From Thalia democratica (taxonomy: Eukaryota), in assembly GCA_965202585.1 (NCBI GenBank), contig OZ241828.1, forward strand, positions 24,056,001 through 24,120,000: 64,000 nt of DNA, given 5' to 3'. The notes beneath the pieces were generated by a model, which was not told where the DNA came from, made no database searches, and saw only the letters and a program-made list of their open reading frames with translations. Within the stretch, counting starts at the first letter, position 1, and each line of letters starts with the position of its first letter. Positions 9,458-56,041 of the stretch are shown here, one piece after another. A program made the position numbers and the translations under genes.

Positions 9458-9584
9458 AGGCATTTTGCCATGCCTTTAAAAATTAATTAGATTTTGAGAG
9501 AAGCAAACTAGGGGTTTTAGAAATTTTTAAAATTTAAACAAGAATCTTTTTCTATTTATTGTGTGCGAAAAGCGAATGACGTCA
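9458..9584 (-). other. CRE-box/dyad motif-pair unit, family 3
   Basis: TGACGTCA at 9577-9584; minus-strand cacaataaatag box; perfect stem AGGCAT-N6-ATGCCT at 9458-9475 (109 nt). Confidence 0.8.
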
Positions 9585-10647
9585 CTAAGTGTCACATTCT
9601 AATTATAAATGCAATAATTTTAAATTTTACCTCTAGAAATGCACGTTTTTTAGTAGAAGCTGTAAAATCTACGCGCTTCTTATTTAATTAAACTAAACTT
9701 TGTTATAAAGTTTTGACTAATATATTTTTTTTTGTATAATGTGAATATAGGTAGAATAGAAGTTAAGATTGTTTAAATGTACTACTGTATTGCAATGAAA
9801 CATTTTATTTGCAGTTTCAATAAAACGACGTTTTATAGCATTTCTGATCACAAATAATGTTGTTTTAGTTTGTATCGTAAAGAACTATGTTTAATTAAAA
9901 GTGTATCTAATAATAAATCCGTGTTTTTTTAAATTCTACTTTATTAAACCTTGACTTTTTTCAACGTAAATAACATAAAATTAGATATTTGGATTTAATT
10001 ACTTTAATAATTATTCGAAACTACATATTTCTTTTTTTTTTTACTACATTCCAACGTTGTAAAAAAAATTAAAATTTTAAAAAACCCAGTTTAAAGAAGT
10101 TTGTTAATAAAAAATATTTAAAACTTTTTTTAAAATAAGTTAATTCAATATAAAATAAGATAAAATATATCATAAACAAATTAATGTTGTAGATATAGCG
10201 AGTGGAATTTTTTAATACTGCGTTATAGAATTTTTTAATACTGCGTTATAGTTAATTACAATTATAAAGCGAGGTGTAGAGATAATTAAAAACAATTGGT
10301 GCAAAATATATTAGTTTAATCTATTTAATGACAGATATTTAAACGTTTAAGTTTTGAGTTCGTTGTTAGTGTCAATAATATCTTTAAGACAGCTCCACAC
10401 TGAAGATACATCTAGTCAAATAAATTTTGGAAATTTATTTTATTTTAGAAAAAAAAAAACCTTTAAATTTTTACGGAAGCAATTAAACACTAATAATAAG
10501 ATGTTTAACAAATATTAAATTAAAGTTATATAACACTTTAAATTTGTTTAATGAACGACCGTACGACTACTTTTTCTTTATTTTAAAACAAATACCTATA
10601 GTTTGAACACCATTACATAGATAAAACATTACATCAGTAACTAAATT

Positions 10648-10783
10648 GCTATCTACTAGAGACAATTAAAAACTTAAAATATTTTTTGTTCTAAATAAGC
10701 TAAACTAATAATTCTTGTTTAAGCAAAACATTTAACTAAACAAACAAAAGTATTTGATAGTTATTCTAAAACTAACAACATCA
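10648..10783 (-). other. Degenerate family-1 unit
   Basis: Minus strand reads TGATGTTG, then TTAATTGTCT-ctagt-AGAGATAG about 112 nt later. Confidence 0.5.
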
Positions 10784-11442
10784 CACTATATTTTAAAATA
10801 TCCTAATAGATAAGTCTAAGCTTCGAACATGAACATTTAATGTATGATATTGGTGTTTAACGTTTTTTATTACAATTTGGCTGTTTTTATAGGTATGATA
10901 AACTTACATCATAATAAATTACAAATAGTTTTGATTGAGTCTTGTTGTAATCCACAGGGATATTCCATAATTATTACTGAGTCATCAATAAAAAAAAATC
11001 ATATTTTTTTTTAGTTATGAAAAATTGATTTTTGATAAATTTTTAACATGTTTGGGTGAGGTGAGTTAGTGATAAGGGTATATTAAAAATGAAGAAATTT
11101 AAATGATTTTGTTGACTTAGCTAATATTAGAGAAAACACATTTAAATCATAATCGGACCCATTTCGAATAGTCGTAATATTACTTATATAAAAGTAATTT
11201 TACAGAATATTAAATACTAGTATTCAAGTTTAATTTGCTACTGTTAATTTTCTTTAGTATAATATTTCTTTTTTGATCATCATTGCATTATTAGTTAAAA
11301 ATTTATAAGCCACATAGCTACAATTGAATTTGATCATGAAAGAAAATTTTATACCGGCCTTTTCGAATTCGGACATAATTTTCATAAAATTTTCTATACA
11401 TGCTTTTATAAACGTACATTTATTTTGATATTTATAATTTAA

Positions 11443-11531
11443 AGTATTTTTGTAGCTTTAAAAGCGTCCAAAATAACTAAAAAAGTACACAGCATACAGT
11501 CGATGTTAATAGCTTATTCTGTAGCTTGAGC
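11443..11531 (+). repeat. Dispersed ~90-bp repeat, copy 2
   Basis: Matches 8798-8892. Confidence 0.7.
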
Positions 11532-12004
11532 AGAATTTAAGCTATTTATTTGTTTATTCCCAGTTATCTGAAATCCTTTTTTGTGTTATTATTTTTTTTT
11601 CTTTGTTTTTAAAATGCTAGGGTAAAATTCAATTTCCATCCGACGGAAAGAAGAAGTTGGGTGAGGGTTCTCTTACAAAATAGCGGGAAGAGAAAGTGTT
11701 ACGCTACTCCAAGTTTCACTTGCAAACCGTTTTGTTTTTATGAAAAAATTAAGAGTTATTGCTTTTAAAATTCTTGCCCCGGCAAAGTAACATGAAACAA
11801 AAAAGTGAGAAAGAGAGTAAAGAGAATGAGAGCGCATTTCTCATTTATAGCGTACAATCAAAACTGCATGATGCAACAATTCATTTAATGTTTTTTGTCA
11901 AAAACTGGTACAAAATCTTTTCGTTATGCTCCAGAACAGTTTACCGTCATGCCCAGAAACAATCTAAAGAAGTTTCAAACTGATAAAAAAATTGTTAAAA
12001 TATT

Positions 12005-13003: not shown

Positions 13004-13267
13004 ATCATTTCTAACCCGCTTTCACTTCTAACCCGATCACTTCTAACTAAATCACTTCTAACCCGATCAACTCTAATCCGATCACTTCTACCCCGATCAC
13101 TTTTAACCTGACCACTTCTAACACAATTATTTCTAATTTGATCACTTTTGACCCGAACACTTCTAACCATATCATTTTTATCCCGATCATTTCTAACAAG
13201 ATCACTTCTAACCCAATCATTTCTAACCGATTTAACCCAATAATTTTTAACCCGATCACTTCTAACT
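13004..13267 (+). repeat. 15-bp tandem repeat (ttctaacccgatcac), about 17 copies
   Basis: Period read directly; it explains the listed ORFs 13047-13259 and 13138-13368. Confidence 0.95.
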
Positions 13268-15334: not shown

Positions 15335-15370
15335 GAAATATTTTTACACAAGCTCCTTGTTTTTTGAAAT
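15335..15370 (+). other. Candidate 36-nt exon of an unidentified host gene
   Basis: Strong acceptor ttttttttttcag and donor gtaagta bracket 36 nt; two of three frames are open (NIFTQAPCFLK or KYFYTSSLFFE). Confidence 0.35.
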
Positions 15371-17343: not shown

Positions 17344-17463
17344 TGACGCAATAATTTATAATAACAAAAACTAGCTAAGAAGTAAAATTATTAATAAAAA
17401 AAGCTATATTGTTTTTAAAGAGGATAGTTTTTCTGAAGTTTTCTGACGTCTCTACCAGTCAGT
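17344..17463 (+). other. CRE-box/dyad motif-pair unit, family 1
   Basis: TGACGCAA at 17344; aataacaaaaactagc box; variant dyad CTGAC-gtctctacca-GTCAGT at 17443 (about 98 nt). Confidence 0.75.
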
Positions 17464-18480: not shown

Positions 18481-19363
18481 AAATTTTATTCGTTTTTAGT
18501 TGGCAATATCGCAACCTTACGGGCGATTAATGTTATCAGGAGGCGTTAAATAATAAGGCGACGAAAAGATTAATGGGTAATTAACTACTAAGAAGCGACA
18601 TCAGATAAATAGGGTAACTATTTTTAAAGATTTCCAAGTGTGTACCTAGTTACAACAAAATATAAGTTTATGAAACCAAGAAATAAACAAGTCACTAAAG
18701 GTATTTAATTATCGGCTCTGTTAATTCTTTTGCAACAATAAGGTTACTGTTTGGTTTCTGCCTTTAGTCAAAAAATTTTTGAAACTTAAAAAAAAAATTT
18801 GTAGTTGAAAAAGCTTTTAGCTCAGAAATAGATATCTTAAATAAAATATCAAACTTTTACTTACACAGTAAGAAACTCAAGCTTTACTTACCTTATTAAA
18901 ACCAAACATATGACTTTTAGCTAGTAGTCGTCATGGTCATCCTTTACATTAAAACTCAGATCAGACAAAATGTTTCGTTAGTTATGAATTAAACTTCTAT
19001 AAATAATTTTTACTAGTAATTTAATAAGTTCGGCTAACAATTATTATCATTTTAGTTTGTTGGCTTGTATGTTTAGCTGGCTTATAACTAGATAAAAACA
19101 TTTTACCAAAAAAATAGTTTTTATAACGACGTAATAAGTTCTACATTACTTAAAAGCTAATTATTACTGTTAATAAATATTAAATTGTCTTTTGTTAAGA
19201 TTCATAGAATTAATAGAATAATATGTATCAATTTTGTGAAGTGACTTTTAGTATTTTATACAATGTAAATACTAAATTACTGCATTAATGTATATTAATA
19301 TAACTAATAGTTTCTTAGAAAGATCTAAAACATTGAATATAAAACTAAATAAAATTCATGTTG

Positions 19364-19477
19364 TGACGTCAAGATTTAAACTAAGAAAAACATTTTGAAA
19401 AGTTCATATAAATTTTACTAAAGCTATACAGTATCCCACGATTCATACATACGAAGTTTCTGCTACAAGCAGACAGT
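19364..19477 (+). other. CRE-box/dyad motif-pair unit, family 1
   Basis: TGACGTCA at 19364; gtttCTGCTacaagcAGACAGTAA ending at 19477 (about 92 nt). Confidence 0.7.
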
Positions 19478-19973
19478 AATTTATTTACTTAGAGGATTTA
19501 ACGTTTTTCAATGGTAAATTTTTAATTATTGTATATAACTCAGTTTTCATAATACATAAACCCAATTTATCGGTTGTAATATGAAAATAATGAAAATGGT
19601 AATAGTCATATGATACTTAAATACAAAGTTTAAACAAAGTTTGTTTAAAACTTTCGTTCATAAATTTTTATTTATTATCTATGTAGTTACTTAAATTCAA
19701 CTGAATGTAAGTTTTAAACTTTGCTATGTTCAATTTTTATTTGCTTACGCAAAAAATGTTTTTTTTTTTTTTAATTTTTCTTGTTTCGTTAAGGTTTCTT
19801 ATTATTAATGTTTAGCAAATTCAATTGTCGATTCGAAATCATTTTATATGAGATTTTATTATTTAAAATAAATATTTAAGTAACTAGTTATCTTAAGTAT
19901 ATTTTTGGTTTTACACATAGTTTTTTTTTATAAATTTCTTAATACATATCAAAAAAACACTTGATCACTAAAT

Positions 19974-20442: not shown

Positions 20443-20490
20443 CTATAGATTGTAACTTTGTAACACTAAAATTAATAGTAAAACGCATAC

Positions 20491-20713
20491 TGACGTCAAA
20501 AGCGTTTTACATAAAAAATAAATTATATTTGAGTATATAAGTAAATTTTTAATCATTAACAAAATCTTAAGGACTTGCAAAGGTCCTAGTTGAATCTTAA
20601 ATTGCTTGTAAACATGTATTTAAATTTTTTTTTACTAATGCACTCTACAAATGATTAATTCCAATGAAAATTCAAAGTAAAAATTAAATTTTAAAGGGCA
20701 CTTCAAAGCGCCT
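20491..20713 (+). other. CRE-box/dyad motif-pair unit, family 3 (long spacer)
   Basis: TGACGTCA at 20491 flanked by the inverted repeat gtaaaacgc / gcgttttac; GGGCAC-ttcaaa-GCGCCT at 20696. Confidence 0.65.
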
Positions 20714-21374
20714 TAAAGTATACTCAACTGATTAAAAATATTATTCTAAGCTTATGGTTTTTCAATATATAAGAGCTTCGTTTACTTTTTTGTTCTTTTA
20801 ATTAGATTTTTATTCAAAATGAAAAATAAACAAAATAAAAGAAATAAGAAAACTCAATGTTTTCAAGTTTTAGCCGAATTGACACAAATAATTTTGAAAT
20901 ACAACATTTAAATTCATAGTTTAAAGCTTAAGTAGCCGAATTATTAGCATCTTCTTTCGAACCAAATGTCTAAAAAAAATTTTCAAAGGTTTCACTTGTA
21001 ATTTTACTTTTTATAATAACGCTGAAGTGTATAGTGAGTTTTTTTTTCAAATTTCCTGTAAATTGTTCTTCGAATCTTTTCTTACTCTTCATTTCAAACC
21101 CAGCAGTATCTAATGTAAATTAGAAAGTTTTCTTTTTCGACCCAAATTTGTATGTTCACAGTCTGTAAGTTTGCCGATCCCTCAATAAAACTATAGAAAA
21201 ATAGAGCTATGTGTTATATTGCAGCTAAACGTTCAATTAAATTCAAAATAGTTTCATTTTTTAGTCACTTTTATTAGTCAGTATTAACATTTTTTAATAA
21301 GGAAGCACGATCAAAATTTAACAACTTGTATAAATTCAAGAAGTTTAATATAATTATAAATTTAAAGAAAACTA

Positions 21375-23879: not shown

Positions 23880-26800
23880 CAATAATAGTTAGAATGCGTT
23901 ATTTAATGTTTTGCATTATAAACTAAGTTACATTACAAAACTCTTTGCAATGTAAATCAAAATGAAAATCGCATTATAAATGTTTTACTGACGTAATAGT
24001 ATTTACCACAATCGATTAAGTATTTGAAATGAATTTTAAATGACTTTTAAATTACTGTTTAGTATTACTGTTCATGCTGTAATTTTCATACTGTAATAAT
24101 GAATTAAATTTTAAAAGTCGTTAATAATACGGCTGATAAGACTCACAATCCTATATCCTAAATAATAAATGTATATAAAAAATCCTAAATAATTACCGTC
24201 GGTTTTATCGCTGTACTAAAAATATTTAATAAGCAGTTGAACTTATTTGGTTGCTAAAATACCTTTATATTAATTAAACATGTTAGCCTTATATTTGTTG
24301 CTCTAATTACTTACACAAAATAGTGGCATGAAATTCAATTGTTTCTTAAATATATTTAACAATTTCCCAAATTTTTTAGTATTTATGTAACAAAATGCAG
24401 TTTATTTTAGTCAACTTCGCTGCGCATTTCAGCATTTAAGAAAATACGACGGACTTTAATGAAGGCAGAAAATTAAATTATTTAAAATATTCCTGTATTT
24501 GTTTATAGTACAAAATGAAACTGAGAAGTATTTAAGTTATAATTAATAATAATGTTAATAATCTCTCTTAGTAATTTTGAGACACTAAACTTGAAAAAAA
24601 CCTAAATAAAGAAATTTATTTACAAGCATTTCACGTAACTTATGAATTTAAAATGCAGTTCGTAACAAAAAATAAATACGATGTAAAATAATTGTAATCA
24701 TTGTAAATCAAATTATATCTAAAAATAATTTACAATACAAACTTAAACTTGCTAATAATATTTGTCATTATAAATAGTCTTATGATTTCATAACTATTGT
24801 TTGATTTTTTGCAATTAAACAATACTCATAAGTATTTTAGCTACAGAAACTAACAACATATCTTAGCTTTAAGTCGTTATTAACGCGGCTAACGAGATTT
24901 ATTATTTTTTTATAGCTTTAACAAATAAACACTAACTTTAATTGTTCTATAACAGCAGTTTGTAAACAATTACCTAAACTGGAATTAATTAAAAAGTTTT
25001 GATTTAAATAAAACTAAACCAGTTAAATACAAGAAATCAAAATGATGCTAAATTTATTATAAATCATATTGCATTAAAATGAAGTTTAAGCAATAACTTC
25101 AAAATTTTAATTAAGTTTTAATTTATTTTCACAGTAATTTGTTGAAAACTATTTGCTGTTACAAAATAATTTTAAATTAAAGCTGAGTTAGATTTTGAAT
25201 ATTTTATGTTAAAAGACAATGTGCATTACGAAATAGTTTATACTATATAGCGATATAAGTTAAAAATTTGATTTGTTTAAACAATTTGCAAACTAAAAGA
25301 TAAAACTTATTCTCGAAAAAGTTTCACCGAGATAAGTTAAGCAATATAAGTTAAAATGCGTTGTAATGTATTTAGCATTAGAAACTAAACTATACTTTTT
25401 TCAATAAAGGATAAAATGCGTTAAAAAAATAATTCGCGTTATAAATGTTTTACTGACGTCATAACTTTCACCACTCACGCTCAATTATTTGTAATGCATA
25501 TAAATAACTAAATTTTTAAAACGAAAACATTTTCCAATAGTATGTCAAAAAACTAAATTTTAAAAGTCGTTGAAAATAACGGCTAATACAGTGTGAAAAT
25601 GTAAAAAATCCTACATGGTAACCATTGTGTTTTTATGCCGTACTAAAATATTTAATATTTAACAGTTTAACTAAATTGGTTAGTGGAATAATATTATATC
25701 AATAAAAATTTAACTAAATATTTGGTTGCTCTAACTATAAATAAAATACTAAAAGAAATTAATCTCATATATGTTTTATATTAGCTTAGTTTCTTTATAA
25801 TAATAAAACAATAATGTTTGTCAACCAAGCAGCGAAGTTGTACAAATAAAAAAAAAAGGAGCGACATTAGAGATGTCATAAAAAATACGTTGGCAGTGGA
25901 CGGTAAACTGATTACTTAACCAAGTTTAGATGCGATATTGATATATTGTTTCAGATTATTTTGCATACTTCATTTTTTTTTTGTTTTAGTGATGTAGTTA
26001 TTCTTTATTAACTGAACTCTTCGCAATGTTAATCAAAATGCGTTAAAAAAAAAGTCGCATTATAAATGTTTTACTTACGTAATAGTATTTACCACAAACG
26101 ATTAAATATTTGAAATGAATTTTGAGATGACTTTTGAATCGCTGTTTCGTATTACTGTTCATAATTTTATTTTCTGTTAAATTTTAAAAGTCGTTAATAA
26201 TACGGCTGGTAAGACTCACAATTTTAAAAAATTCAAATGATTACCGTCGGTTTTATCGCTGCACTAAAAATATTTAATAAGCAGTTGAATTTTTCTGGTT
26301 GCTAAAATACCATTATATTAATTAAAAATATTAGCCTTATATTTGTTGCTCTTATTACTTACACAAAATAATGGCATGAAATTCAATTGTTTCTTAAATA
26401 TATTTAACAATTTCCCAAATTTTTTAGTATTTATGTCACAAAATGCAGTTTATTTTAGTCAACTTAGCAGCGCATTTCAGCATTTAAGAAAATACGACGG
26501 ACTTTAATGAAGGCAGAAAATTAAATTATTTAAAATATTCCTGTATTTGTTTATAGTACAAAATGAAACTGAGAAGTATTTAAGTTATAATTAGTAATAA
26601 TGTTAATAATCTCTCTTAGTAATTTTGCGACACTAAACTTGAAAAAAACCTAAATATAGAAATTTATTTACAAGCATTTCACGTAACTTATGAATTTAAA
26701 ATGCAGTTTGTAACATAAATAAATACGATGTAAAAAAATTTAACCATTTTAAATCAAATTATATCTAAAAATAATTTACAATACAAACTTAAACTTGGTA

Positions 26801-28053
26801 ATAATATTTATCATTATAAATAGTCTGATGATGTCATAACTATTGTTTGATTTTTTACAATTAAACAATACTCATAAGTATTTTAGCTACAGAAACTAAC
26901 AAAATATCTTAGCTTTAAGTCGTTATTAACGCGGCTAACGAGATTTATTATTTTTTTACAGCTAAAACAAATAAAGACTAACTCTAGTTGTTCTATAACA
27001 ACATTTTGTAAACAATTACGTAAATTGGAATTACTTTGTTTGATTAAAATAAAACTAAACCAGTTAAATACAAAAAATCAAAATGATGCTAAATTTATTA
27101 TAAACCATATTGCATTAAAATGAAGTTTAAGCCATAACTTCAAAATTTTAATTAAATTTTAACATTATTTTCACAGTAATTTGTTGAAAACTATTTGCTG
27201 TTACAAAATAATTTTTAATAAATGCTGAGTTAGATTTTGAATGTTTTATGTTGAAAGACAATGTGCATTACGAAATAGTTTATACTATATAGCGATATAA
27301 GTTAAAAATTTGATTTGTTTAAACAATTTGCAAACTAAAAGATAAAACTTATTCTCGGAAAGTTTCACCGAGATAAGTTATGCAATATTAGTTAAAATGC
27401 GTTGTAATGTATTTAGCATTAGAAACTAAACTATACTTTTTTCAATAAAGGATAAAATGCGTTAAAAAAATATTTCGCGTTATAAATGTTTTACTGACGT
27501 CATAACTTTCACCACTCACGCTCAATTATTTGAAATGCATATAAATAGACTAAATTTTTAAAACATAAACATTTTCCAATAGTATGTCAAAAAACTAAAT
27601 TTTAAAGGTCGTTGATAATACGGCTAATATAGTGTGAAAATGTAAAAAAACCTACATGGTAACCATTGTGTTTTTATGCCGTACTAAAATATTTAATATT
27701 TAACAGTTTAACTAAATTGGTTAGTGGAATAATATTATATCAATAAAAATTTAACTAAATATTTGGTTGCTCTAACTATAAATAAAATACTAAAAGAAAT
27801 TAATCTCATATATGTTTTATATTAGCTTAGTTTCTTTATAATAATAAAACAATAATCTTTATCAACCAAGCAGCAAAGTTGTACAAATAAAAAAAAAAAA
27901 GCGACATTAAAGATGTCATAAAAAAACGTCTGCAGTGGACGGTAAACTGATTACTTAACCAAGTTTAGATGCGACATTGATATATTGTTTCAGATTATTT
28001 TATATACTTCTTTTTTTTTTTTTTAGTGATGTAGTTATTTTTTATTAACTGAA
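23880..28053 (+). repeat. Higher-order tandem array: two ~2.05-kb copies (23941-26016, 26017-28053), each a trimer of 0.62-0.79 kb family-2 monomers
   Basis: The two copies are near-identical over long stretches. CRE-like boxes are at 23989, 24783, 25454, 26075, 26829 and 27495, and AGTCG...CGGCT-type hairpins at 24116, 24872, 25565, 26189, 26918 and 27607. Confidence 0.92.
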
Positions 28054-28893: not shown

Positions 28894-29001
28894 AAGCAGT
28901 TTGCAGTGCCTTTAAAAATTTGTTTAGAAAAGGAAAAATAGTACATTCGTATCTATACTCACTGTTGACTAACTTTTGTGTGTAAAACGCTTGTGACGTC
29001 A
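28894..29001 (-). other. CRE-box/dyad motif-pair unit, family 3
   Basis: TGACGTCA at 28994-29001; minus-strand cacaaaagttagt box; AGGCAC-tgcaaa-CTGCTT (90 nt). Confidence 0.8.
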
Positions 29002-29451
29002 GTAAGCATGTTAAAATACATTTACTATTAGTTAAGAACTGTGATTTGTATTACTAGGAAAAAATATAAACTGTGCTATTAACAAACTTGACTAGTTTTA
29101 AACAATAGTAATCTAACTTTAATTTATTTGATGATGTAAACAAAACAAATGTTATTAACAAACTTTAGATGTCGAATGATAAATTTGTTTAAATAGTTTT
29201 GAAGCAAAATTTTATAAATGCTTATGAAACACTTTTAAATGACATAAAACTCATGTCACTTTTATCAATAAATTTTTATCAAAAGTATTAAAAATATTTT
29301 CAAACTATATCGGAATTTCACTTTGCCAGTACTTATCATTCTAACAATCTTATTAAGAGAAAAGTTTAGAATTCTTATAACTTTTAAATTAGGTTTATAT
29401 GGTTAAAAACAGAATTAAAAAGTTTTAAATTTTTAAAAATAAAACTATTTT

Positions 29452-31893: not shown

Positions 31894-32028
31894 ACTTTCT
31901 GCTTTAGACAGCTACAAACTTTGGTAGCGTCAAACATCCCAAATAAAGAATATCTTATTTATTTATCACTTATATTTATTTTATCAGTATTTTTTAGGTA
32001 GTTTTTGTTAGTTTACATTATTACGTTA
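31894..32028 (-). other. CRE-box/dyad motif-pair unit, family 1
   Basis: Minus strand: TAACGTAA; taacaaaaactacc box; GTAGCTGTCT-aaagc-AGAAAGTAA (113 nt). Confidence 0.8.
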
Positions 32029-32760
32029 CATATTTTAATTTGATTAAAATTGTATTATAAACTTTTCTGATTGATTAGAAGTTTTAACTGTTTGGTACAA
32101 CTTTAAAATTTTTAATTTTAACGGGTTTAATGGGAACGTCAAGTGTCTTTGTTTAATCATTTTTCTATAATATTTAAAAGGTACTAACAACTTCCTTTAA
32201 ACACATTGTGCTTTTTTTACTTTACAAAAAAAGTTGTTAAAATAAACAAACAGTTAATTCTTTAGTAAACACTAATTTATGAATTAACAAAAATATAAAA
32301 ACTTTTTAGCTGTTTTATTAATAAAAAAAGTTTAATCCAAAACACTTAATTGAAATTAAAGTACTATTTTAGACTACAAAAACATAGTAAAATAAGTATC
32401 TAGTTAGATAAATTTTCCTTGCAAACAAATAAGAATTTTTGTTATGTTGATATCATTTATTTGTAATAAAGTATGCCTTATTTCTTTGTCAATCTCATTA
32501 TCTTAAAAATATATTAAATACAAATAATTAAAAATAGTTTTCGGTGAGTATACAATATTTTATATAAAACTATGGTACAAACAATCTTGAGTGTAAACTA
32601 ATTATGTAACCAAATTTGAAATTTAACCGATTCTAAAAAAATATATTAGTTCTCGCTAAAAATTATAAAGTTTGTGTTATATATCTAAGAACTTCAATAT
32701 AAAGAACACTTAAAATCTGAACACAAATTTAAATAGATTAATTCCAAAACTTAGTAATTT

Positions 32761-32880
32761 ACTGTCTACATAAGACAGCTACAAACTTCAAATTTTAGCT
32801 CAATGAAACATTAAAAAGGTCTAATTTAATTTATTATGTAATTTTCAAACTAGCTTTTGTCAGTTTAGATTATGACGTGT
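32761..32880 (-). other. CRE-box/dyad motif-pair unit, family 1
   Basis: Minus strand: ACACGTCA; gacaaaagctagt box; GTAGCTGTCT-tatgt-AGACAGT (98 nt). Confidence 0.85.
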
Positions 32881-34526: not shown

Positions 34527-34644
34527 ACTGTCTGCTGGAGACCGTTAAAAACTTTAACTTTTAAAACACTTAAATTTAGTAAAAAGCTTTTTCAATTTAA
34601 AAATTATTTTAAGCTAGTTTTTGTTTATTAACATTTTAACGTCA
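34527..34644 (-). other. CRE-box/dyad motif-pair unit, family 1
   Basis: Minus strand: TGACGTTA; aaacaaaaactagc box; TTAACGGTCT-ccagc-AGACAGTA (96 nt). Confidence 0.85.
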
Positions 34645-37589: not shown

Positions 37590-38590
37590 TAAAATGAGTT
37601 ATAGAAAATTTTGCATTACAACTTAAGTTACATTACAAAACTATTTGCAACACAAAATAAAATGCCTTTTAAAATAATTCGCACTATAAAATTTTTACTG
37701 ACGACATAATCCTCACCACAAACGCTCAGTTATTTGCAATGAATTTATTAGAATGACTTTTGTAAGCGCATAGTATTGTTTAAGCTTTAATTTCTATTAA
37801 ATTTTTAAGTCGTGCATAATGTGGCTAATAAAGACTCATAATTTAAAATAATCCTAAATGATATCCGTCTTATTTTATCCGTAAAATTAAATTATTCAAT
37901 AATCAATTGAACTGAATTGGTTGGTAAAATACCTTGATATTAATTAAAAATGTTACTCTTTTTTTTGTTGTTTTTGTTGATCTAATTACTAACACAAAAT
38001 AATGACTGAGAAGCCAATTATTTCTTATAAATATTTAATGCTTTCCCAATTATTTTGTTATTTCTACCACAAAACGCAGCTTCTTTCAGATCAATTAAAC
38101 AGCGCATTTTCGCATTATAGATAGAAACGAGCGATGTTAATAAAGGAAAAATCAAAGTTATCTAAATTATTTCTGTATTTGTTAAACAGTATAAAATGAA
38201 CTTAAAAAGCAACTAAGTAATAGTAAATAATATTATTTTCAATTTATCTTAGTAGTTTTACGACACTAAACTTTAAAAAAATCTAAATAACTAAGTTTAT
38301 ATACAGGCATTTCACTTAATTTATGAATTTAAAATGCAGTTTGTAATGAAAAATAAATTGCAATGTAAAACAACTTGCATTGTAAATGAAATTACAATTT
38401 AAACTATATTACAATATAAACTAAAATATGCTAAAAGTATTTAGCATTACGAACCGAATAATAATTGCATAACTATCATTTGATTGTTTGCAATTTAACA
38501 ATACTCATAAGTATATTATCTAAAATAATGCATACTTGTAACCTAGCAAAATATCTTAATTAAAGTCGTAAATAAGACTGCTAACCATTT
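37590..38590 (+). repeat. Diverged family-2 copy (monomer A plus head of monomer B)
   Basis: Colinear with 23900-24890. TGACGACA at 37699, hairpin AGTCGT-gcataat-GTGGCT at 37808, second hairpin AGTC-gtaaataa-GACT at 38564. Confidence 0.85.
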
Positions 38591-41697: not shown

Positions 41698-42792
41698 TGC
41701 TTGAAGTTTAAGTAATGAAAGATATTAAATCTTAATTATTGCTAAATGTTTTAGATAATTTGATTATATTTTAAAAAGTAAATATTTAAATCTTAATTAG
41801 TAAATTAAGTTTACAATTAAAGTTCAAACTACTTCTTTAAGATATAGAAATATATATATATATATATAAATTCAGTTACTTTAGAGACAGTTTGATAAAG
41901 TTAGTTGTACTGTTTTAAAGTATGTAGCTTTGTCAAGATTTGTAACATTATTTTATATGTTTAATTAATAGAGTAAACATGCTGTAAAAACAAAAATATG
42001 GTCTTTCTGCATCTGTTGTCGAGACTTTAGAATTTCGCTAGTTATTTATTATGTAGGTGATAAATCACATAAACAGACAGCACAAAAAAAAATTAGCTTT
42101 AAGTGTTATGCTTTATAAAGTTATTTTTGTAAAAAAAATTTCTAATAAAGCTTTATTCTACAGAATTCTATCTGAGCGATAAGTTTTTTTTAAAAAAGTT
42201 ATATAACAAAAACCTTCTTTTTTTTTAATATGTTACATTGTAATTTTTAACTTTATTGGTTTCTGAAAGTAGAAGCAAACTATAACAGCAATAGATAAAG
42301 TAACTTTATTTAAAATTTATGTTCTGCTCCAAGATATATGAAATTTAGTTTTTGTGAAGTAAATAGTTGCAACCTTCTTGTGTGCTCTCAGTGTGAGTGA
42401 TTTTTTTTGGTTGAATTTTAAACTGAACAAAATGACTCAAAATTGATCGGTTATTATATAAAAGAATATTGGTAATAATAGATTTTTAAAATAGGACCTA
42501 CGAAAATATACCAACTAAAATTACTTCAACTAATATCAAGTTAATTTATTTTAAGCTAATTAGTTAATGTAACATTACAGGACAGGGTATCTACATACTT
42601 TGACCTAAACATTATAGGCAAAAAAGTTAAACAAAAAGTTTTCTGGTAACTCTAAGTCATTACACTTTTTTAAATTAAATTGTTAAAGATATTTTTAATT
42701 TTATGTTAACTTTTATTATAATAACATACTAATTTATTTTAGGTTTTAAAACGTAACTTTCACAAAACAAAATTAATAAAATCCAGTTTATC

Positions 42793-43742
42793 ATGAGCCA
42801 AAACACTAACATTATTGAGTGGGACGATCCTGTTGAGAACTTTGAAGATAATCCCAACTGGAATGAAGAATTCGTCAACCATGAGTTCGAGCAAATGCGC
42901 CTTGAAAGAAGAGCTGAATCTATGAGAGAAAGGGATGATGCAGATGTAAATGAAAGGTTAAGGGAGATCAATGAAAGAGTGCAGGAACTTCGTAGGTCTT
43001 TTAGGTCAAGGGATCTTCGCGATGGGATGATCCTGTTTGAGCAAACCAGGAACCAGCCAGTCATTAGAGGTAATTCGGAAGTTTTTAACAAAGAATTAAA
43101 GTACATAATTAAGTAAAAATAATGAAAATTACAAAACTCTATTTAAAACCTTTTAATGGTATTTAAAAACATTTATTTAAACATAAGTTATTTAGAGACA
43201 ACTAAGAATCAACCTGCTATCAGATGTAATTTTACCAACTTAATTTTGACTATTTTTAAATTAACGTTTATTATATCAATATAAAATAATAATTTCTAAA
43301 TTAAATGATAACAACTTGAAGAAAAAGTTTATTTTATAAAATTAACTTAAATGAAAGTTTTAAAAAGTAAAGATATTTTTTATCAATTTTGAGAAAAAAC
43401 AGAAACGAAATATTTTCTCAGGTCAACTACGAAGACAAGTTAGACCACGCACGAGGTTAAACTCGGTTGATGAGCATTCAGACGAAGAAGAAGATATTCC
43501 AACTGAAAAACCTATAAGCAAAACAACTTTTGATCCTCAGCAGAACAATAATGTTGCAGGTAAGTTGAAGTTTTTGTAGATTACTTTTGTTTTTGGATAA
43601 AGACTAAATAAAAACTTTAATTTCAGGCCCTTCGCAGACACCTCTTAGATATCCTGTTGCAAGCAGGGTTCAGGATAGTTCTTCTCGATATCTTCAATGT
43701 AGACGGTACCCATTTGATTACTCACGATCCGGATCAAGATGA
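42793..43742 (+). CDS. Three-exon orphan gene, 176 aa, charged/disordered protein with a predicted coiled coil (exons 42793-43069, 43422-43559, 43627-43742)
   Basis: GT-AG introns of 352 and 67 nt, both phase 1, join into one open frame: MSQNTNIIEWDD...PVIR-GQLRRQVRPRTRLNSVDEHSDEEED...NNVA-GPSQTPLRYP...YSRSGSR*. The exon structure is conserved in the inverted paralog. No family recognised. Confidence 0.8.
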
Positions 43743-46279: not shown

Positions 46280-48060
46280 TTACTTCACTACTTTTTAAAC
46301 TGATATTAATAGGTAGGCCACCCCTATCTTCTTTATGCTAAATTTTAAATTAAAATGCTTGCTAAGTATTTGGTCTTGATCAATATTTGGCCTTGAGACT
46401 TTGCTCGTTGTCGAACTAAAAGGCTTGCCAAGTATATGTGCTTGATCAATTATTTTTCTTAAGACTTTCCTCGATGTTAAAGTAGTAGGCTTGCCAATTG
46501 CTTGTGGATGATGAATATATTTTTCTCATAAGAATTTGCTCGATGTCGAACTATAAGGCTTGTCAAATACTTGTGCATGATGACAAAAACTACTTTTCTA
46601 CAAGTCTGTGTTTAATTTTTATACTTTTACCCTCGAAGACATTTGTGTTTGAAAGCTCTAACGTTTGCAGCTTCTGGCGATTTTTTCTACATAGCACTAT
46701 ATCAAAATTAACTACAGTACCATATGTCATTGACTTCAGGAACTTGGTTTTGTACTTTTTCATAATGGCAGACTGGTGAAAACAAATATCATTCTGTCAG
46801 TTGTCACAATTAATAAAAACATAACCTTTGTGGTTATTCAACCAAATTACTTGACCAGTCACTCCTAAAGCTATTGTTTTTTTTTGTAACTGGAAACTAG
46901 TGCTTGGTTTTTTGTGACACTTTTATACACCCTTTAGTTTCACATAATGGAATTAGGTATCTAGAAAAAAACACCACTTTCTTTTCTAATGATCAAATTG
47001 ACTATTTTTTGATGTTTTTTTTTGGGACTTTTTAACCAAAGGCTTAGTAAGAGATATGAGACACTCATCTTCTACCCCTCTCAATTTTTTGAACATAAGG
47101 ATAAGTTTTTTTTGGCTCATAAGGCTCAAATATATCAGTAAAGTTACAATCCTTAGGCTAATTACCATTACACGTTTTTTCTTTCCAGCGTTGATGTGCT
47201 TGGAAGATTTTTCTATTTATTGAATTTTCCAAAGTATTATTGACTTCTTCATCATTGTGGAATTTATAGTAGTTACCATAGCTATTACTATGGTTAACAT
47301 TAGTATGATGCATTCTATACTGATAATCATGATTTTTGGTGTTTGTTTGAAAATATCTATACTGATTATTTTTTTTTTGCTATGAAAATCTTCGAAATTT
47401 TTGTTAGGGGTTCATCAATAAATCAAAATATTACCCTCGACCCTTTTTTGCTGTTGACTAACATCACATATATTTTTACAGCAAATTTTAAAATTTTCTT
47501 CACAAAGGCATATTTTTTTTTCTCATTTAAGTTTTTAACTCTTTTGGTGCTAAATGTATATAGAGGAACTTAGTTAGATTACTATTTTTTTGAGCCCGTT
47601 TTCTTGTTTTTTATCTCAATGTCTAGTTCTAGACCACTCAGTGATGCCCAATCTTGCTAAGACCTAAAAACTCTCCCAAAATGACCATCTTTTGTGAGTA
47701 AAAACGTTTTTAAAAATAAATATGATTTATTGTCTGCCTTAGTTATAGCACAATAGTTTTTGATGTCTTTTCACAAGCTATACTGCCATTAATATTTTAT
47801 ACTTGTCGATTGGGTTGTGAATGTCGTTAATATTACATGACTCTTCGAAAAAATTGAGCTCGCCTCTTGGTTCATCTGAATCATCTATTTTTAAGTTGTT
47901 CTTAAGCAATTTTCTGCTTCATGTTTCACTCGTGTAAGTTAATTTGCCTATAAATTGGTGGACATTCCAAATTTCTACTTTTAAAGAGTTACTGGTCAAA
48001 TTAATATTATACTTATTCTTAATACCCATTTCCATGTTACTGATGTCATTATTCAGTGTA
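46280..48060 (-). pseudogene. Decayed intronless ORF containing a Y-box-type cold-shock domain (46660-46865), probably a retroelement relic or retrocopy
   Basis: Minus-strand translation GVTGQVIWLNNHKGYVFINCDN*QNDICFHQSAIMKKYKTKFLKSMTYGTVVNFDIV-(frameshift)-KSPEAANV aligns with the Y-box CSD, including RNP1- and RNP2-like motifs. Surrounding frames are coding-like but full of stops; the outer limits are approximate. Confidence 0.75.
46370..46575 (-). repeat. Three ~63-66-bp tandem repeats downstream of the cold-shock domain
   Basis: gatcaa...gacttt(g/c)ctcg(t/a)tgt...aggcttg(c/t)caa recurs three times; the minus frame reads KPYSSTSSK / KPTTLTSRK / KPFSSTTSK. Confidence 0.75.
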
Positions 48061-49578
48061 TCCAAAACAACAAAAAAAAAATAATAAATGTAAAGAAAAA
48101 AATTGAAACACTATAAAGATAAAAAAAAATCACTGGTCACTAGCTAGTTATTACTATAAACCAACTTAAAATATTATACTTTTAATAAGTATATCTATTA
48201 AATTTAAAATAATATTATACTTCATACTTAACTTTATTAACGTTGAACTGATAAAGTGATGGTAAAATTTTAATAAAAGTATAAACTTTATTACCTTAAA
48301 AATTTTTTTTTTTGCTTTTGATATCTGATGATGAAAAAAATTGTTGAAATTTTAAAGTTGATTTCGCTCAATCAAAATTTTTGTAGTTTATAAACTATGC
48401 TATAATGTGTCGTTTAATTATTCAGAAAAAAATGTATGAAACGTTAAACGAGCTTGTATTTAAAACGATTGTATTTCCAGAAATAACAAAATCTCAAACT
48501 TCGTAACAATAGTGTTAAAATACCGTGTTATGAAAAATTTCGTTAAAGCTCAACTTTCTAAATAAAATTTTATGTTTTGTAAATAAGTTTAAACTATTAG
48601 GTATTTCAGTCTACAATTAGTTTCATCATAAACTTTAATAAAGTACTAAAAACCCAAAATGCTGCTTTGATATAATAAAAGCATTTAAAATGATTTAAGT
48701 TACTTAAACTTCGAACTTAACGAGTTGCTTTTATTGCTAATTTCATTTTAATGAAAATAAATTAGATGTATAACACACTGTTTTTCTTAATCTTAATTTA
48801 TAAAAGTTAAAAAAAAATATGCAGTAAAAAATTTTATACAACTTGTAGCTTTGTGATCGTTGCTACTAAAAACAAAGTTTATGTATAGTTAAATTGAAGT
48901 TTTAACACTAATACAGTAAGTCTTTTACACAATTAGACTCACCAAACTTAAACTTGACCTTAAGCTGTTATTAAGTTTAGTATTTTATATCATTTTTTTT
49001 TCTTCTATTAGAAGACAAAGTTCTAAGTTTGAAAATGCTATTTTCTTTTATCTAATAACTTTTAGTAAGTTTTTGTTTGTTTTAATTATAACGTCCCATT
49101 TACTATTCCATTTTATACTTCGTTAAGAATTTTTTGTTTAATATAATAACAGCATATAAAGTATAACTTTAATAAACTTTTCTATCTATTAAAAACCTTT
49201 GTTTTAAATATATAAATTACTTTAAATTTACTGTTTCCTACCTGGAGTTTAAATTAAAATGAAAAGGTATTTACAAAAAATAAGCTAGAATTTTAGGTGT
49301 TTATAAAATTAATAAAGTTTACGGTAAAATTTAAAATTCAGTAAGTAAAATATCATTCAACAGTACATAAGAACTATAAAGTGATAAAAATGTTTTTGAA
49401 TTTTTGTAGTAAGTATTTAGCACTGATGTTTATTTTAAGTTAGTTTTGAATATTAAAATAAAATAAGTGCGCCAAATAGACTTTTCTGTAAGCGATTCGT
49501 ATAAAAGCGGAATAGTAGAAAGCTCGCAACTGCTGGAGTTACCTATATGCTGAAACAACCTTTATCAGTAGTTTATCA

Positions 49579-49698
49579 ACAGTCTGCTTCAGACATCTAT
49601 AAACTTCAAACACAACATTTGAAAGGTTTCCATGTAATTAAATTTTATTAATTATAACTTTTTGTAGTAGTTGATGTTAAATTTAATGCATGACGCCA
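49579..49698 (-). other. CRE-box/dyad motif-pair unit, family 1
   Basis: Minus strand: TGGCGTCA; taacatcaactac box; ATAGATGTCT-gaagc-AGACTGT (98 nt). Confidence 0.8.
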
Positions 49699-50335
49699 CG
49701 TGTGATTAAGTTATTTAATACTTTATTACAAATACTTCATATGCAAAAGGTTACATATGATAAACAACTATGATGCTTCCTTTAATAGGTAACCTGTATA
49801 ATTGTTATAGGTTGTGAAGTGTCGCTAATTGGGAGATTGTGCTTATATATAAATACTGGCCTAGTCAATAATACAACGTAAACTTTAACTTATGTAAGAG
49901 ACAATCTTAAGTTAGCTAATTACTATATTTATTTAATAATTGAAAATGAATTACTTAGTTTTAACTAAGTGTTTTAATAGATTACTTGTTATACGGCTAA
50001 CTTAATTGGACAAAATATGTTTTTAAAATAAAATATGTAAAAATATATTATAATAGAATTCTATACAACATAAAATATCATTTAAACAAGACATTACTTT
50101 TTTTAAAAGACTAATTTACTTAAATCAAAGAAGCTGAACACAAAAAGTTTTCGTTTAAAGTAAACTCATCGAACAAACCAAAAGAAAACTGACCGTTTGC
50201 TTTTTACAAGATGTGATTTAAACAAATTCATAAATTTGGCTAGAAGTTAGCTGCTAAGGATGCAACAAAAAAAATACAAACTCGACTACAAATTATAAAA
50301 CTAATAATTTTAAAATTAATCAAAGTGAATCTATC

Positions 50336-50878: not shown

Positions 50879-51143
50879 ATTAAAATTCAATGTAAAAGTT
50901 TGTAAAATCAAGTTGATACTCCACTTTTAAATTCTTTAAAGTTTATCAAAAAAAAAATTTAAGTTATTTATATTAAATACTTGTTTCTTATAAAAGTGCT
51001 TTATTTTAGAGAATTTTATTTTTACTTTTTAAAGTATATAAAAGCAATTAATACTTGCTTTTATCTTATGTAATTATTAAAATAGAATTAAGAATGTTAA
51101 AAATGTAAAGTTTAAATATTTAAATTTAATTAAATATATAAAA

Positions 51144-51252
51144 TGATAATTTCAAGCGCAAAAACTAGCTGTACTGTTTTTTATAAATAAAACAATTTTA
51201 TACGTTCGTTACATCGGTTTTTATTAATTTATAGTTATCTTAAACAGATAGT
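51144..51252 (+). other. CRE-box/dyad motif-pair unit, family 1
   Basis: Degenerate CRE (TGATAATT); gcaaaaactagc box; ATAGTTATCT-taaac-AGATAGTAA at 51231 (87 nt), with a compensatory G-C to A-T pair. Confidence 0.65.
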
Positions 51253-52914
51253 AACTTAGATTCTCTAAATGTTTGATTTATTTTTAATTTTTTATATTTT
51301 ACATGATAGTTTAAACTATTGTTTAACTTACTGTAAATTTTTTTTTTTAAATTTTCTTGTTAAAATGAAGAAAAAGTAATCAATCTGTAATTAATAATGA
51401 TGTAAAGTATTATAGTCTTATTTAATTTATAGATTAAATTATTTTTTGTTCCAATGTCAAATTTACCATACAAGTTAAGTTTTACTTTTTAACTTGTTTT
51501 TATGTATAGTTTATTAGATATTTGTTAAGTTGTTTTTTTGTAGAGTAAATTAGATATTTGTTAAGTTTTCTTCAAAATACATTTGTACATTGAAAAGTAT
51601 AATTTCTTTTTAGATAGATATTTATATTTCCTTAAGTTTTTACAACAGTTATAGTTATGAGAATAAGCAATCATATTTGGTTAATAACAAATAATAGATA
51701 TGTTTTTTTTTAATTAATTTAATCACAAACTAAAAAAGTTTACAGATGTTATAAACGTATAGTATGACTTACAGTTTTTTTTTTATACTCGTGTTCATTC
51801 TTATTTATATATTTAAAGATGAGACATATGTTTTTCTTTTTCACTGCATTTATACGACTTTTCCCTTTTTATGTTATTATGAAACTTGGTTTAGTTTTTT
51901 CGTTTTTTTGTAAAAGATCAACAAGAAAAATGTTAACGTACATGATTGTAAAAGTCAAAATCTAGGGAAGGAGAGGGTGTAGTGCTTATGGCACACTATG
52001 GTTTCCATAGTCAATATTGGTAGAAATAGGTATAAAAAAAAAAGGCACACCATTTTTTTTCGTTTAAAGATAATCTAGTTTTGAATTTATTTAAATAGTA
52101 ATACTTTGAAAAAAAAAATTAAGTAATAATGTTGATTTTTTGTTTATCTTGAGTTTATTAATTAGTTTAATTAAAACTGCTCAAAATAAAAAAATTATGG
52201 TGTGAGGCTCGATGACCGAAAGGTCTTTTTCTAAAACCAATCCTATGACCATAGTTGTGACTGTGAGCGTTCACATTTTTCTTTCTTTTCCTTTTTTATT
52301 TCTTACTTTAGTATTATTTCAATAAAAAATTAATGTTAATTTTTAGATAAAGGTCTACATTCAAAATTGAGCTTAATACCTCAGTTTTGTAACTGTAGTG
52401 TTTTTTTAAATCGTGGTTTGAACTATTTAATTCTCATTACAATAGTAAAAAGAGTAAAGTTTAAAAAACTAATTCACAAAAGTTGTGATCTTTATAAAGT
52501 TTACTGATATAAGTATTAAATATATATATAATATACACTGTAACTCAGGATTTCCTATTCCTTTACGTTAACAAAAGCAGCACGATACATGAATTAATTC
52601 TTTCGAAAATTTATTTAACAAACTAAGTTTCGGTCAAAGACCTCGTTAGTAAAAATAAATCTAAAAAGGATATGTGACAGTCATGGAAAATAGCATATAA
52701 TCATTAAAATTACTATAAAACCAAATTGAATTGATTTTAATGTAGCTTATTTAAATTGTGACGTAATTATTCAAAATTTAAACAATCTTGTGCTTTTAAT
52801 CGCTATGAAAATTTGAAATCTCGCTCAAATACAGCACGATATATTTTAAGCAGTTAGCAGTTAATGAACATTAAAAAAAAAACATAGTAAAGTATAAATT
52901 AAATTAAACGTATG

Positions 52915-53034
52915 TGACATCAGAATTTATAAACTAACAAAAACTAGCTAAACATTAAAAAATAAATTTGAGTAAAACATTTTGGATTCTTTAACTTTGT
53001 TCATGAAAAGTTTTTAACTGTCTAATAGTTACGT
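52915..53034 (+). other. CRE-box/dyad motif-pair unit, family 1
   Basis: TGACATCA at 52915; taacaaaaactagc box; TTAACTGTCT-aatag-TTACGTAA at 53014 (99 nt). Confidence 0.8.
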
Positions 53035-53748
53035 AAAATAGCTAGTGATATCAGTTTGCCATTTTAATAGATATTTTGACTTTAAATGTTTTATACACAA
53101 AGTAATATATTATTACTACTATTAGTTTAATTATCAGCAAAAACACAAATAAATACAGAAAGAGAATTGGTGTAATATATGTGAAACAAAAAAACTAAAA
53201 CTTGAAAAGAAAAGTAGATATTTAAATAAAGTACGAGTCATAAAATTGTTGTTTGAGTTATTGACAAACACTACTACGAAGAATATTTATGAATTCTGTC
53301 TTAGATTGTTGTTGTATGTTATTATAAGTTTTATTTATTTGTTAATTTAATTTAAAGAAATCAAAAACGTTTATTCAGAACAACTTCGTGTATAAAAAAT
53401 ATTTATAGGACTTTTTTTAAAACTTTATTTTTTCTTAAGTTTAGCAAAATAATAAATAAATCAAAATTTTAAAAACGTGTTGACTTAGGGGAGTTATGTA
53501 ATTTAGATTTTAGTATAAGTCATCAAATGCTATAATTTTTTTTTTTTATACATTGAACTAATTTCATAAGATTTACTCAATAAAAACTCATAGGGTGTGA
53601 AACGTTAAAAATATATTTAAGTTTAGGGATTTTTCGTGTAATGATTGACGCATAGTTAAATAAAACACAATGTATTTTAAGCAATATGTTAGAAACTGAT
53701 GTTATTCTCTAAAATTTTCTACTAAAACAAGTATTAACTAAAAATATA

Positions 53749-53867
53749 TAACGTCATAACTAAAACCAACAAAATTTATTTCGATATTTAGAAAATAAAA
53801 TAAATTAGAATTAAAAACATTCTTCAGTAATAATTTCTAAAGTTTCTAGCAGTCTTCAAAAGCGAGT
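53749..53867 (+). other. CRE-box/dyad motif-pair unit, family 1
   Basis: TAACGTCA at 53749; accaacaaaa box; CTAGCAGTCT-tcaaa-AGCGAGTAA at 53846 (97 nt). Confidence 0.75.
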
Positions 53868-54313
53868 AAATTATTTATTTAAATTATTAACTAGCTTAAT
53901 AAATATTTAGGTTTTGAAATATTTTCTATATTTTAAAACCAAAGTAAACGTTTTTAGTTACACCAGTTTATTAATTTAATGAAAATATCAATAACAACTT
54001 TACTTGTAAAGTTAAGGTTAAAAGTAAATTCAATACTAATGACACATAACAATTAAAAAACTAACTTAAACCCTTCTTATAATTTAGAATTAGTGGCTTT
54101 CATCGGCGTAGCGTAGGAAGGGAAACTAACGCTAATGTGCACCGAAGAATGATGAAAACAAGAAAGTTTAGAATGTACTCCTTTCCAATTTAAGCATTTA
54201 ATTTCTCTACTTATTTTTTTTTTTAACTGTGTATATGTACTATTAAAAAATTAAACGAACTTTTTGGATACCAAATATTCATAACCGTTGCGCAGAAAAA
54301 ATTGTGTATCGGC

Positions 54314-54352
54314 TTTAATGCAAAAGTCCATTCTTTGGACTTTTGCATTAAA
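54314..54352. repeat. Perfect 17-bp inverted repeat with a 5-nt loop
   Basis: tttaatgcaaaagtcca-ttctt-tggacttttgcattaaa. Confidence 0.95.
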
Positions 54353-55907
54353 AATGGATTAAAAATGGAAATTTTTGCAAATGGATTTTTTCTTTATTCG
54401 TAAACTCTATGAAACTTAAAATTCAAAAAATACGCACTAATGTTTGTGCACCGTGGTAGTATCACGAATTTTGATTATTTTTTAATAATGAAATGAAAAA
54501 CATTTGTAAATAAAATATCGAGAATAAAAAAAATTAATAACTTATAAAAAATAAAAGCAAACTATTAGTTTAAAAAAAAAGTAAAACTAAAACAATAAAT
54601 AAAAAAAAGCATAATTTCTTTACAAAAATTATATTTTTTCTTAATAAATAAACACTGCATACTGTGAGTACCGTGTTAGCCTCACTTTACATAACTTTAA
54701 AATTATACAAATTAATTTAAGTCTCAGTAAACATACAGTTTTTAGTTAAAGTAGTATTTTGTTCACTTTAAAGTGAACAAATTACAAATTGAGATAACGC
54801 TAATCAGTAAAGTTGAAAAGTTTATGAATTTTCGTCGCAAATTTATCTATAAGCTTTTACACTGGTTTTATTCAACTACTCCCTAAAACTCTTAGTTTAT
54901 ATCAGTATTTTTTTTTACTGTAATAATATATTTTAAAAATGCTGAGTCTTTATTGGTTAATAAAGGATAAAAATTTTAATAAGTCTAAATTAAAATTTAA
55001 AAAGTAATTTTTTATTATTGAACATGCATTTGGTAATTAATATCCACTGTTACTACAAAAAGGATCTATAAATACTGTGTAAAAAAACCATATTTAAAAT
55101 AGAAAATAGTAATATCAAGTTATAAATAAATTTATTAAAAAAAGATGAATTATTTTTCTTATTTTACTATCAATTAGTGCTATTTTTAAACAAAAGATAG
55201 TTTTTTTTAATTTTCATTATAGTTATAAAATTTCCAAATATTATTATTTTAAAGTTTCTTTTCTAAAGTCTGTTTGAGATAAAAACAAAAAATATTATTT
55301 TAGATTTTTAAACGAATTTCTTTCAAAAAAAATAATTTTTTTAGATATTTTCATGTTTTAAAAAATTCTAAAAAGAAATTGAACTATTTAATATTGTTTT
55401 ATATACATTTGGTTTGTATAAGAATTTATTATGAAAGTGTTTTTAACTAAGGGTTTGCACAAGGTTTATCGGGATTCTCAAGACATTTAGGGTAACTTAG
55501 GATGTATTGAAGTTTTTGAAAAGTTTATTATGAATCAGTACAGCTTAGAATAATTCAAGATTATTTTAGGTTATTTTTCAAACTCAGGATAACTCAAGAT
55601 AGTTTTGTTTTATATAAAAGACTATGGATAATTAAAATACTTTAAAAAATGTACAGTTTTTTATAGTTTTGAATGATATTTAGTTGATTTAGTTTCAATT
55701 ATTGTTAGCTTATAACCAATAAAGAACTTAATTATATTTTAACTTAGAAAAAAAAATTTAAAGGTTATCAAACTTCATAATGACTCAGAGTAATTATTTC
55801 TAGAGTGTACTTTTGTTTGAAAACTAGTCAAGTTTGGTAAAAACACAGTTTTTTTCTACTTCTACATTAAGCGCTTGACTAAAAATAATACTTTCTGACA
55901 CGCATAA

Positions 55908-56041
55908 TGACGTCACAGGAGTTTTACACACAGAAACTTAATCAAGTTTGAGTATAAAAAGAGATGTATTGTTTAAATGATAAGTTTTAAAATAAAAGTT
56001 ATCAATCGATATAAAATTTTAAAAGGCACTGCAAAGTGCCT
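55908..56041 (+). other. CRE-box/dyad motif-pair unit, family 3
   Basis: TGACGTCA at 55908; cacagaaacttaa box; perfect stem AGGCAC-tgcaaa-GTGCCT at 56024 (116 nt). Confidence 0.8.

Follow-up and report, generated by a model that had tools for sequence, protein, structure and literature searches.

The 64,000-nt stretch of the Thalia democratica genome analysed here (GenBank assembly GCA_965202585.1, contig OZ241828.1, positions 24,056,001 to 24,120,000 of the forward strand; hereafter the window, in whose coordinates all positions are given) is poor in G+C (21–31%) and, under the standard code, almost devoid of long open reading frames (ORFs). It is populated by about 45 copies of a short unit of about 130 nt, each made of a promoter-like head that begins with the octamer box TGACGTCA, a copy-specific stretch, a U-run and a tail formed by a 6–7 bp hairpin. 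The octamer has 11 exact sites in the window against 0.24 expected (33 against 8.6 when one mismatch is allowed), and all 11 fall inside units of one of three sequence families. An initial annotation of this DNA had proposed these three families; they are real, every exact copy of the box sits in one of them, and their members are more numerous than it had seen. Profile searches of the window gave about 25–30 copies of family 1 on both strands, nine of family 2, which are confined to the + strand and form two clusters, with one further fragment, and four to five tails of family 3, which amounts to about one unit per 1.5–3 kb, in both orientations. The family profiles give no cross-detection among the three.

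The distance from box to stem is 98–101 nt in family 1, 109–114 nt in family 2 (89 nt in its B subtype) and 90–116 nt in family 3, and a U-run precedes every stem, in agreement with the layout first described, a stem downstream of the box after a T-run. The four stems singled out at that time, at 9458, 37808, 51235 and 56024, do lie at those positions. The U-stretch that abuts the stem is AAGUUUGUAG in family 1 and AAAUUUUAAAAG in families 2 and 3. Intact hairpins are predicted to fold at −7.3 to −11.6 kcal/mol (z −2.1 to −4.1). The following units belong to family 1, many of whose boxes are CpG-decay variants:

1037–1173, + strand: exact box, stem with two non-consensus changes
2128–2259, + strand: intact stem CTGTCT/AGACAG
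3330–3462, + strand: family 1 unit
17344–17462, + strand: found with the head profile, stem CTGAC/GTCAG, one pair changed from U-A to A-U
19363–19491, + strand: exact box, shifted stem
31880–32029, − strand: family 1 unit
32747–32881, − strand: intact stem, hairpin at −9.1 kcal/mol
34513–34645, − strand: family 1 unit
49565–49699, − strand: family 1 unit
51138–51266, + strand: stem TTATCT/AGATAG, decayed box, named in the initial annotation
52914–53049, + strand: box TGACATCA, a CpG decay product
58506–58635, + strand: intact stem, box lost
59222–59354, + strand: family 1 unit
59755–59888, − strand: inverted relative to its neighbour at 59222

Families 2 and 3 are represented by these units:

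23989–24134, + strand: family 2, subtype A, box TGACGTAA
about 24783–24890: family 2, subtype B, twin of B'
25454–25584, + strand: family 2, subtype C, exact box, TATAAAT at +45, hairpin at 25565–25584, an extra TATAAAT 13 nt before the box
26075–26207, + strand: family 2, subtype A', degenerate box TTACGTAA
26829–26936, + strand: family 2, subtype B', box TGATGTCA, U·G closing pair in the stem
27495–27625, + strand: family 2, subtype C', recent duplicate (about 95% identity) of the unit at 25454
37699–37826, + strand: family 2, box TGACGACA, two wobble pairs, no stable fold predicted, probably decaying
9458–9584, − strand: family 3, box at 9577–9584, hairpin at 9458–9475, closing pair changed from C-G to U-A
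20491–20717, + strand: family 3, box at 20491–20498, central to a palindrome of about 34 nt; a first tail at 20570–20587 with two fully compensated pairs and a second family 3 tail at 20696–20713
28894–29001, − strand: family 3, box at 28994–29001, shorter middle, hairpin with one G·U and one broken pair
55908–56041, + strand: family 3, the best preserved, box at 55908–55915, ACAGAAACT at +22, TATAAAA at +45, U-run, 7-bp hairpin at 56024–56041 (predicted −11.6 kcal/mol, z −3.7)

The box opens a promoter-like module of three parts, a point missed by the initial annotation, as was the copy-specific nature of the sequence that separates module and tail. The grammar of the head is common to the three families, with an ungapped layout counted from the box (box = 0). 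Of 22 units, 12 have an A-rich, ACAAAAGCT-like block at +19 to +22, where about 1.5% would be expected per unit, and 17 have one resembling TATAAAT at +42 to +48, where about 8% would be expected; the significance of both counts is overstated, since paralogues were treated as independent. The two blocks are 24–25 nt apart and keep fixed offsets in all three families. That families 1 and 3 have the A-rich box in common, as first noticed, is confirmed, and family 2 holds a diverged version of it at the same offset. The suggestion of one old, diversified system gains support as well, because the three families have a common head with identical spacing. At 20476–20510, in a family 3 unit, the box is centred in a longer palindrome, GTAAAACGC..TGACGTCA..GCGTTTTAC, and its AAAACGC/ATGCGT motif is found twice more upstream of family 2 boxes, as AAAATGCGTT.

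The tails of families 2 and 3 align in register, with an identical U-run and three common stem pairs. Paired stem cells reach 96.7%, against 78.7 ± 3.7% after shuffling (none of 500 shuffles was as high), in four of the six stem pairs both partners have changed, and covariation scores 0.644 against 0.301; these figures come from a comparison of two families and are inflated by relatedness. Independent compensations include three pairs between families 2 and 3, two pairs in the tail at 20570 and one pair at 9458, the last being the compensatory change relative to 56024 to which the initial annotation had drawn attention. The stems of the two families contain 12 G·U cells (about 7–8 events) and one A·C. 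Since G·U is so far above A·C, the unit strand is the folding strand. The sequences thereby favour, for the tail of families 2 and 3, a single-stranded hairpin of RNA or single-stranded DNA (ssDNA), formed by the unit strand, over a double-stranded palindromic protein site, as had been argued before on fewer copies. The family 2 copy at 37808, said to keep its pairing through wobbles, does not bear this out: its predicted energy is −2.0 kcal/mol (z +0.46), which is no stable fold, and its box is degenerate. RNAalifold found no consensus structure in the family 1 unit of about 130 nt. A second family 1 hairpin, AGUAA..UUACU, was considered and rejected, because its cells are paired at 57.8%, no better than slid controls.

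Conservation within the units is block-wise. Pairwise identity among family 1 copies is 0.68 in the tail and, within the head, 0.63 (A-rich block) and 0.65 (TATA block); over the 30-nt middle it is 0.32. The last value is the random level, and the best ungapped match between middles equals the shuffled null. Each family 1 copy therefore has its own unrelated middle, unlike what is left by the decay of copies of a master element. In two family 3 copies, the conserved blocks lie at −110 to −72 (87%), at −22 to +45 (70–87%) and at the tail (77–90%), with 10–40% identity between and after them. The first of these is a distal block 72–110 nt upstream of the box (55798–55836 and 29073–29110), 87% identical with its sides at random identity, and could be an enhancer-like element. 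When family 2 subtypes C and A' are compared, the flanks of about 300 nt on each side are 58–65% identical, the tail 88% and the middle 32%; between subtypes, the middle (25507–25553 against 26131–26177) has 32–40% identity and the flanks 58–66%. Family 2 middles have diverged more quickly than the sequence around them, and selection on the blocks alone does not explain it. Family 2 spread as part of 1–2 kb duplications and not as 130-nt units. A search for targets of the middles within the window gave no matches besides the copies themselves and recent duplicates.

The fixed spacing of three boxes, followed by a part of free length up to the hairpin, makes each unit look like a promoter and then a transcribed region. 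Promoters of the small nuclear RNA (snRNA) type have a proximal sequence element (PSE) at about −55 and a TATA box at about −28 from the start. If transcription of the units began about 70–75 nt after the start of the box, the TATA-like block at +44 would lie at about −28, the A-rich block at about −50 and the box, as a cAMP response element (CRE), at about −70, which would be an snRNA-type geometry; the A-rich block is PSE-like by position only. What is observed is an architecture, its spacing, conservation by blocks and, in families 2 and 3, a constraint on pairing. From this we infer, with about an even chance of being right, that the units are individually promoted small non-coding RNA mini-genes of an undescribed kind, in which a constant hairpin tail is joined to a 5′ part that varies; start site, polymerase, expression and function are proposals built on these observations.

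We hypothesize that the head (TGACGTCA, the ACAAAAGCT-like block 12 nt later and the TATA-like block) would serve as an external snRNA-type promoter for an RNA of roughly 35–65 nt, composed of a copy-specific 5′ part, a U-rich, Sm-like or U7-like stretch and the terminal 6–7 bp hairpin, which may stabilise or define the 3′ end. The three families would descend from one ancestor and would have spread by local and tandem duplication, with head and tail kept and the middle unconstrained or under pressure to vary. Many of the copies, including most of family 1 in the window, are probably dead or decaying. Runs of four to five T are common between the TATA-like block and the tail in the middles examined; inside the predicted RNA they would stop RNA polymerase III (Pol III) early, and the polymerase is therefore probably Pol II.

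Several results weigh against such mini-genes. In family 1 (18 copies), 83.7% of the stem cells are paired against 83.5% after shuffling, with 2 double changes where 1.1 are expected, and the departures from the stem (6 G·U, 5 A·C and 14 other mismatches) have the pattern of neutral decay. The claim that pairing rather than stem sequence is constrained, true of families 2 and 3, consequently finds no support in family 1, and the variant stem at 51235, once offered as covariation, carries no weight because paired cells in this family equal the shuffled expectation. The recent 2-kb duplicate in family 2 (about 95% identity) differs by 4.3% in the units and by 4.9% elsewhere, and an older 1.1-kb duplicate is about 73% identical, uniformly throughout. 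A well-kept TATAAAT lies 13 nt ahead of the family 2 box, and the best-conserved stretch of that family runs from −50 to +10, which would suit transcription from the box itself, with a product of about 125 nt. The public sequencing runs that contain this stretch are DNA runs only. Searched against the window at the gathering threshold and up to E = 5, Rfam matched no known RNA family and found no snRNA gene, so that the likeness to snRNA promoters is one of geometry. None of the three consensus U-runs strictly fits the canonical Sm site (purine, A, four to six U, G, purine). Finally, the head profile found one head of the family 1 type that is followed by no tail:

5688–5743, + strand: family-1-type head without tail, box TGACGTCG, then ACCAAAAACT and TATTTATTAAAAAG, 87 nt before a 27-nt minisatellite

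The head may therefore be a general promoter type and not specific to small RNAs.

The decay of family 1 bears on the chief alternative, which we regard as possible, if unlikely: the units would be dead non-autonomous mobile elements, Helitron- or Helentron-like or some other interspersed repeat, the hairpin would be an ssDNA transposition signal, and CRE, AT-rich block and subterminal hairpin would occur in the consensus by happenstance. The high density of the units in both orientations, the neutral decay of family 1 stems and boxes with CpG-type box variants, and the failure of units to be better conserved than spacers in recent duplicates are all consistent with it. Salp genomes, moreover, reportedly consist of repeats to more than 80%, many of them unclassified (PMC5174732, PMC10686999). 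At family 1 copies, the best flanking direct repeat averaged 5.2 nt against 5.4 nt in mismatched controls, which gives no sign of target-site duplications, and the unit flanks that we inspected showed neither inverted ends nor A-tails; a 3′ hairpin without target-site duplications or inverted ends is what rolling-circle elements have. The same inspected flanks, on the other hand, showed no TC start and no CTRR end, which, with the unseen A-tail, speaks against a mobile element. So does the lack of any tRNA or tRNA-like sequence in the window according to ARAGORN (A and B boxes were not directly searched).

Transposon copies decay evenly and, within subfamilies, share their whole length. The units depart from this pattern, with an unrelated middle in every family 1 copy against 63–68% identity in head and tail, and a simple transposon was rejected for the same reason, homology being confined to tail and head blocks (0.63–0.68) around a random middle. 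The spread of family 2 in 1–2 kb duplications instead of as a 130-nt unit, and the same head spacing in three families of differing sequence, are further points against mobility. A partnership with a long interspersed nuclear element (LINE) was also rejected, as the 3′ end of the LINE fragment at 63.3–63.6 kb does not carry the tails of the units. The closest mobile counterparts are Helentron-associated elements of the DINE-1 type, which, like the units, are abundant and short, lack target-site duplications and combine conserved end blocks with a variable centre and a 3′ hairpin. The units differ from them in having a unique, complex centre and not simple repeats, in showing no subterminal inverted repeats or defined termini, and in that one end block has promoter geometry, common across families.

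Transcription of the same genes from the box itself, with a TATA-like stretch some 20–25 nt upstream, would yield an Sm-class RNA of about 120–130 nt. The 5′ third of this RNA, which would include the A-rich and ATAAAT blocks, would be conserved and its centre variable, and the U-run and hairpin would form its 3′ part. We think such a start decidedly unlikely; it stays a live rival because family 2 keeps its TATAAAT before the box and is best conserved from −50 to +10. Conservation in family 1 also begins at the box, and in size and layout such an RNA would resemble U1, U4 or spliced-leader (SL) type RNAs. Family 1, in turn, has no conserved upstream TATA above its AT-rich background, RNAalifold gave no consensus fold for the 130-nt unit, neither an Rfam match nor a spliced-leader sequence was found in the units, and fixed spacing with free intervening sequence is commoner among promoter boxes than within an RNA. 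The regions upstream of the family 2 C units (25300–25453 and 27340–27494) are the best-conserved part of that family and contain a 9-bp hairpin (CTTATTCTCG..CGAGATAAG), two AAAATGCGTT motifs and the TATAAAT 13 nt before the box.

The head that precedes a minisatellite instead of a tail, together with middles in which no constraint was detected, would also suit DNA modules of a promoter or insulator type that give rise to no stable RNA, in which CRE and TATA load factors or polymerase and the hairpin acts as a stop or pause signal. This we consider very unlikely, since the tail is the best-conserved block of every family and since stems constrained to pair, with G·U favoured on one strand, point to a hairpin that is transcribed or single-stranded. 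The minisatellite in question (5775–8561), whose + strand is rich in A, comprises about 103 copies of its 27-nt unit; translated, its initial 250 nt give a 9-residue protein repeat, after which stops follow.

If the units are small-RNA mini-genes, their predicted product can be compared with known systems. U7 snRNA (RF00066) has the same predicted layout, with a short single-stranded 5′ part and a U-rich, non-canonical Sm-like stretch abutting a terminal hairpin. The family 1 U-stretch AAGUUUGUAG ends in AG, like the U7 Sm-like stretch, and the predicted size (about 50–60 nt) and the external snRNA-type promoter would be U7-like too. The resemblance of AAGUUUGUAG or AAAUUUUAAAAG and the adjoining stem to the Sm site and hairpin of U7 is one of layout only: the U7 covariance model of Rfam found no match in the window at the gathering threshold or up to E = 5, the units occur in dozens of copies per 64 kb and not as a few genes, and families 2 and 3 have AAAUUUUAAAAG. 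Furthermore, the 5′ parts are mutually unrelated and therefore cannot all pair with the histone downstream element as U7 does.

The genes of SmY and SL RNAs are, like the units, small and multi-copy, with an Sm-like site beside a 3′ hairpin, several families and a lineage with trans-splicing. The units differ in lacking an Rfam match and in that their 5′ part is not conserved. For an SL 16-mer of the ascidian type, the one match, with 2 mismatches, is at chance level and lies beyond the predicted transcript of any unit, and no conserved GU donor (GT) was seen in the unit alignments.

The nearest described analogue appears to be the mini-gene of nematode PIWI-interacting RNAs (piRNAs). Type I piRNAs, or 21U-RNAs, are produced from mini-genes with a Ruby motif upstream at a fixed distance, said to be derived from snRNA promoters, and their loci, like the units, are very many, tiny and autonomous, each with a short sequence of its own, and lie in clusters that occupy both strands (PMC6436959, PMC7917550). 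The head of the units, by comparison, is CRE, A-rich block and TATA and not the Ruby motif, and the variable part runs into a constant tail of U-run and hairpin, which 21U loci lack. The host of the units is a relative of chordates, and the likeness is one of architecture. Outside nematode piRNA genes we know of no such arrangement, and literature searches gave none.

By analogy with nematode 21U piRNA genes or with a diversified U7, the units may form part of a very large, hard-wired library of guide RNAs, short capped RNAs with unique first 20–35 bases that their constant tail of U-run and hairpin would load into a common protein. We put this forward tentatively and hold it to be rather doubtful; under it, the faster divergence of family 2 middles than of their neutral-looking flanks would reflect active diversification.

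The two salp genome papers do not mention the element (PMC5174732, PMC10686999), its motifs are absent from two supplement files of the latter, and no relevant work was retrieved on the octamer in connection with tunicates or snRNA genes. The box, sought 55–85 nt upstream of the U6 5′ sequence in a metagenome collection that yielded no salp DNA, had no match; the scan for the family 1 tail, which obtained no salp DNA either, gave 30 loci, all chance matches (GC 31–58%, no family profile match). If the units are expressed, they would be a large, undescribed class of individually promoted tunicate small RNAs with copy-specific 5′ sequences, and part of the TGACGTCA excess, as well as part of the “unclassified repeat” fraction of salp genomes, would acquire a function. 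If they are not, they would represent an abundant type of repeat whose conserved blocks mimic promoters and RNA hairpins and would mislead annotation.

Other features were recorded in the window. On the − strand at 63633–63965, an ORF of 110 residues resembles the C-terminal end of a LINE reverse-transcriptase protein, a resemblance to which Pfam gives no support; its 3′ untranslated region has a hairpin of its own, unrelated to the tails of the units. ORFs of 107 and 125 residues overlap on opposite strands at 42729–43116, in a G+C-richer patch. The + frame there is acidic and charged and has no Pfam match and, by exact-protein look-up, no identical gene product on record; Pfam searches on three ORFs of the window gave nothing useful. 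Tandem repeats occur at 13004–13266 (15-nt unit, about 18 copies) and at 46351–46581 (66-nt unit, about 3.5 copies). GC-rich tandem copies of a 41–45-nt repeat, with ATCCGG, TTCCGG and CCGG motifs and then an A-run, lie at 61010–61260 and 62568–62830, each array being preceded by the same 92-nt sequence at 98% identity.

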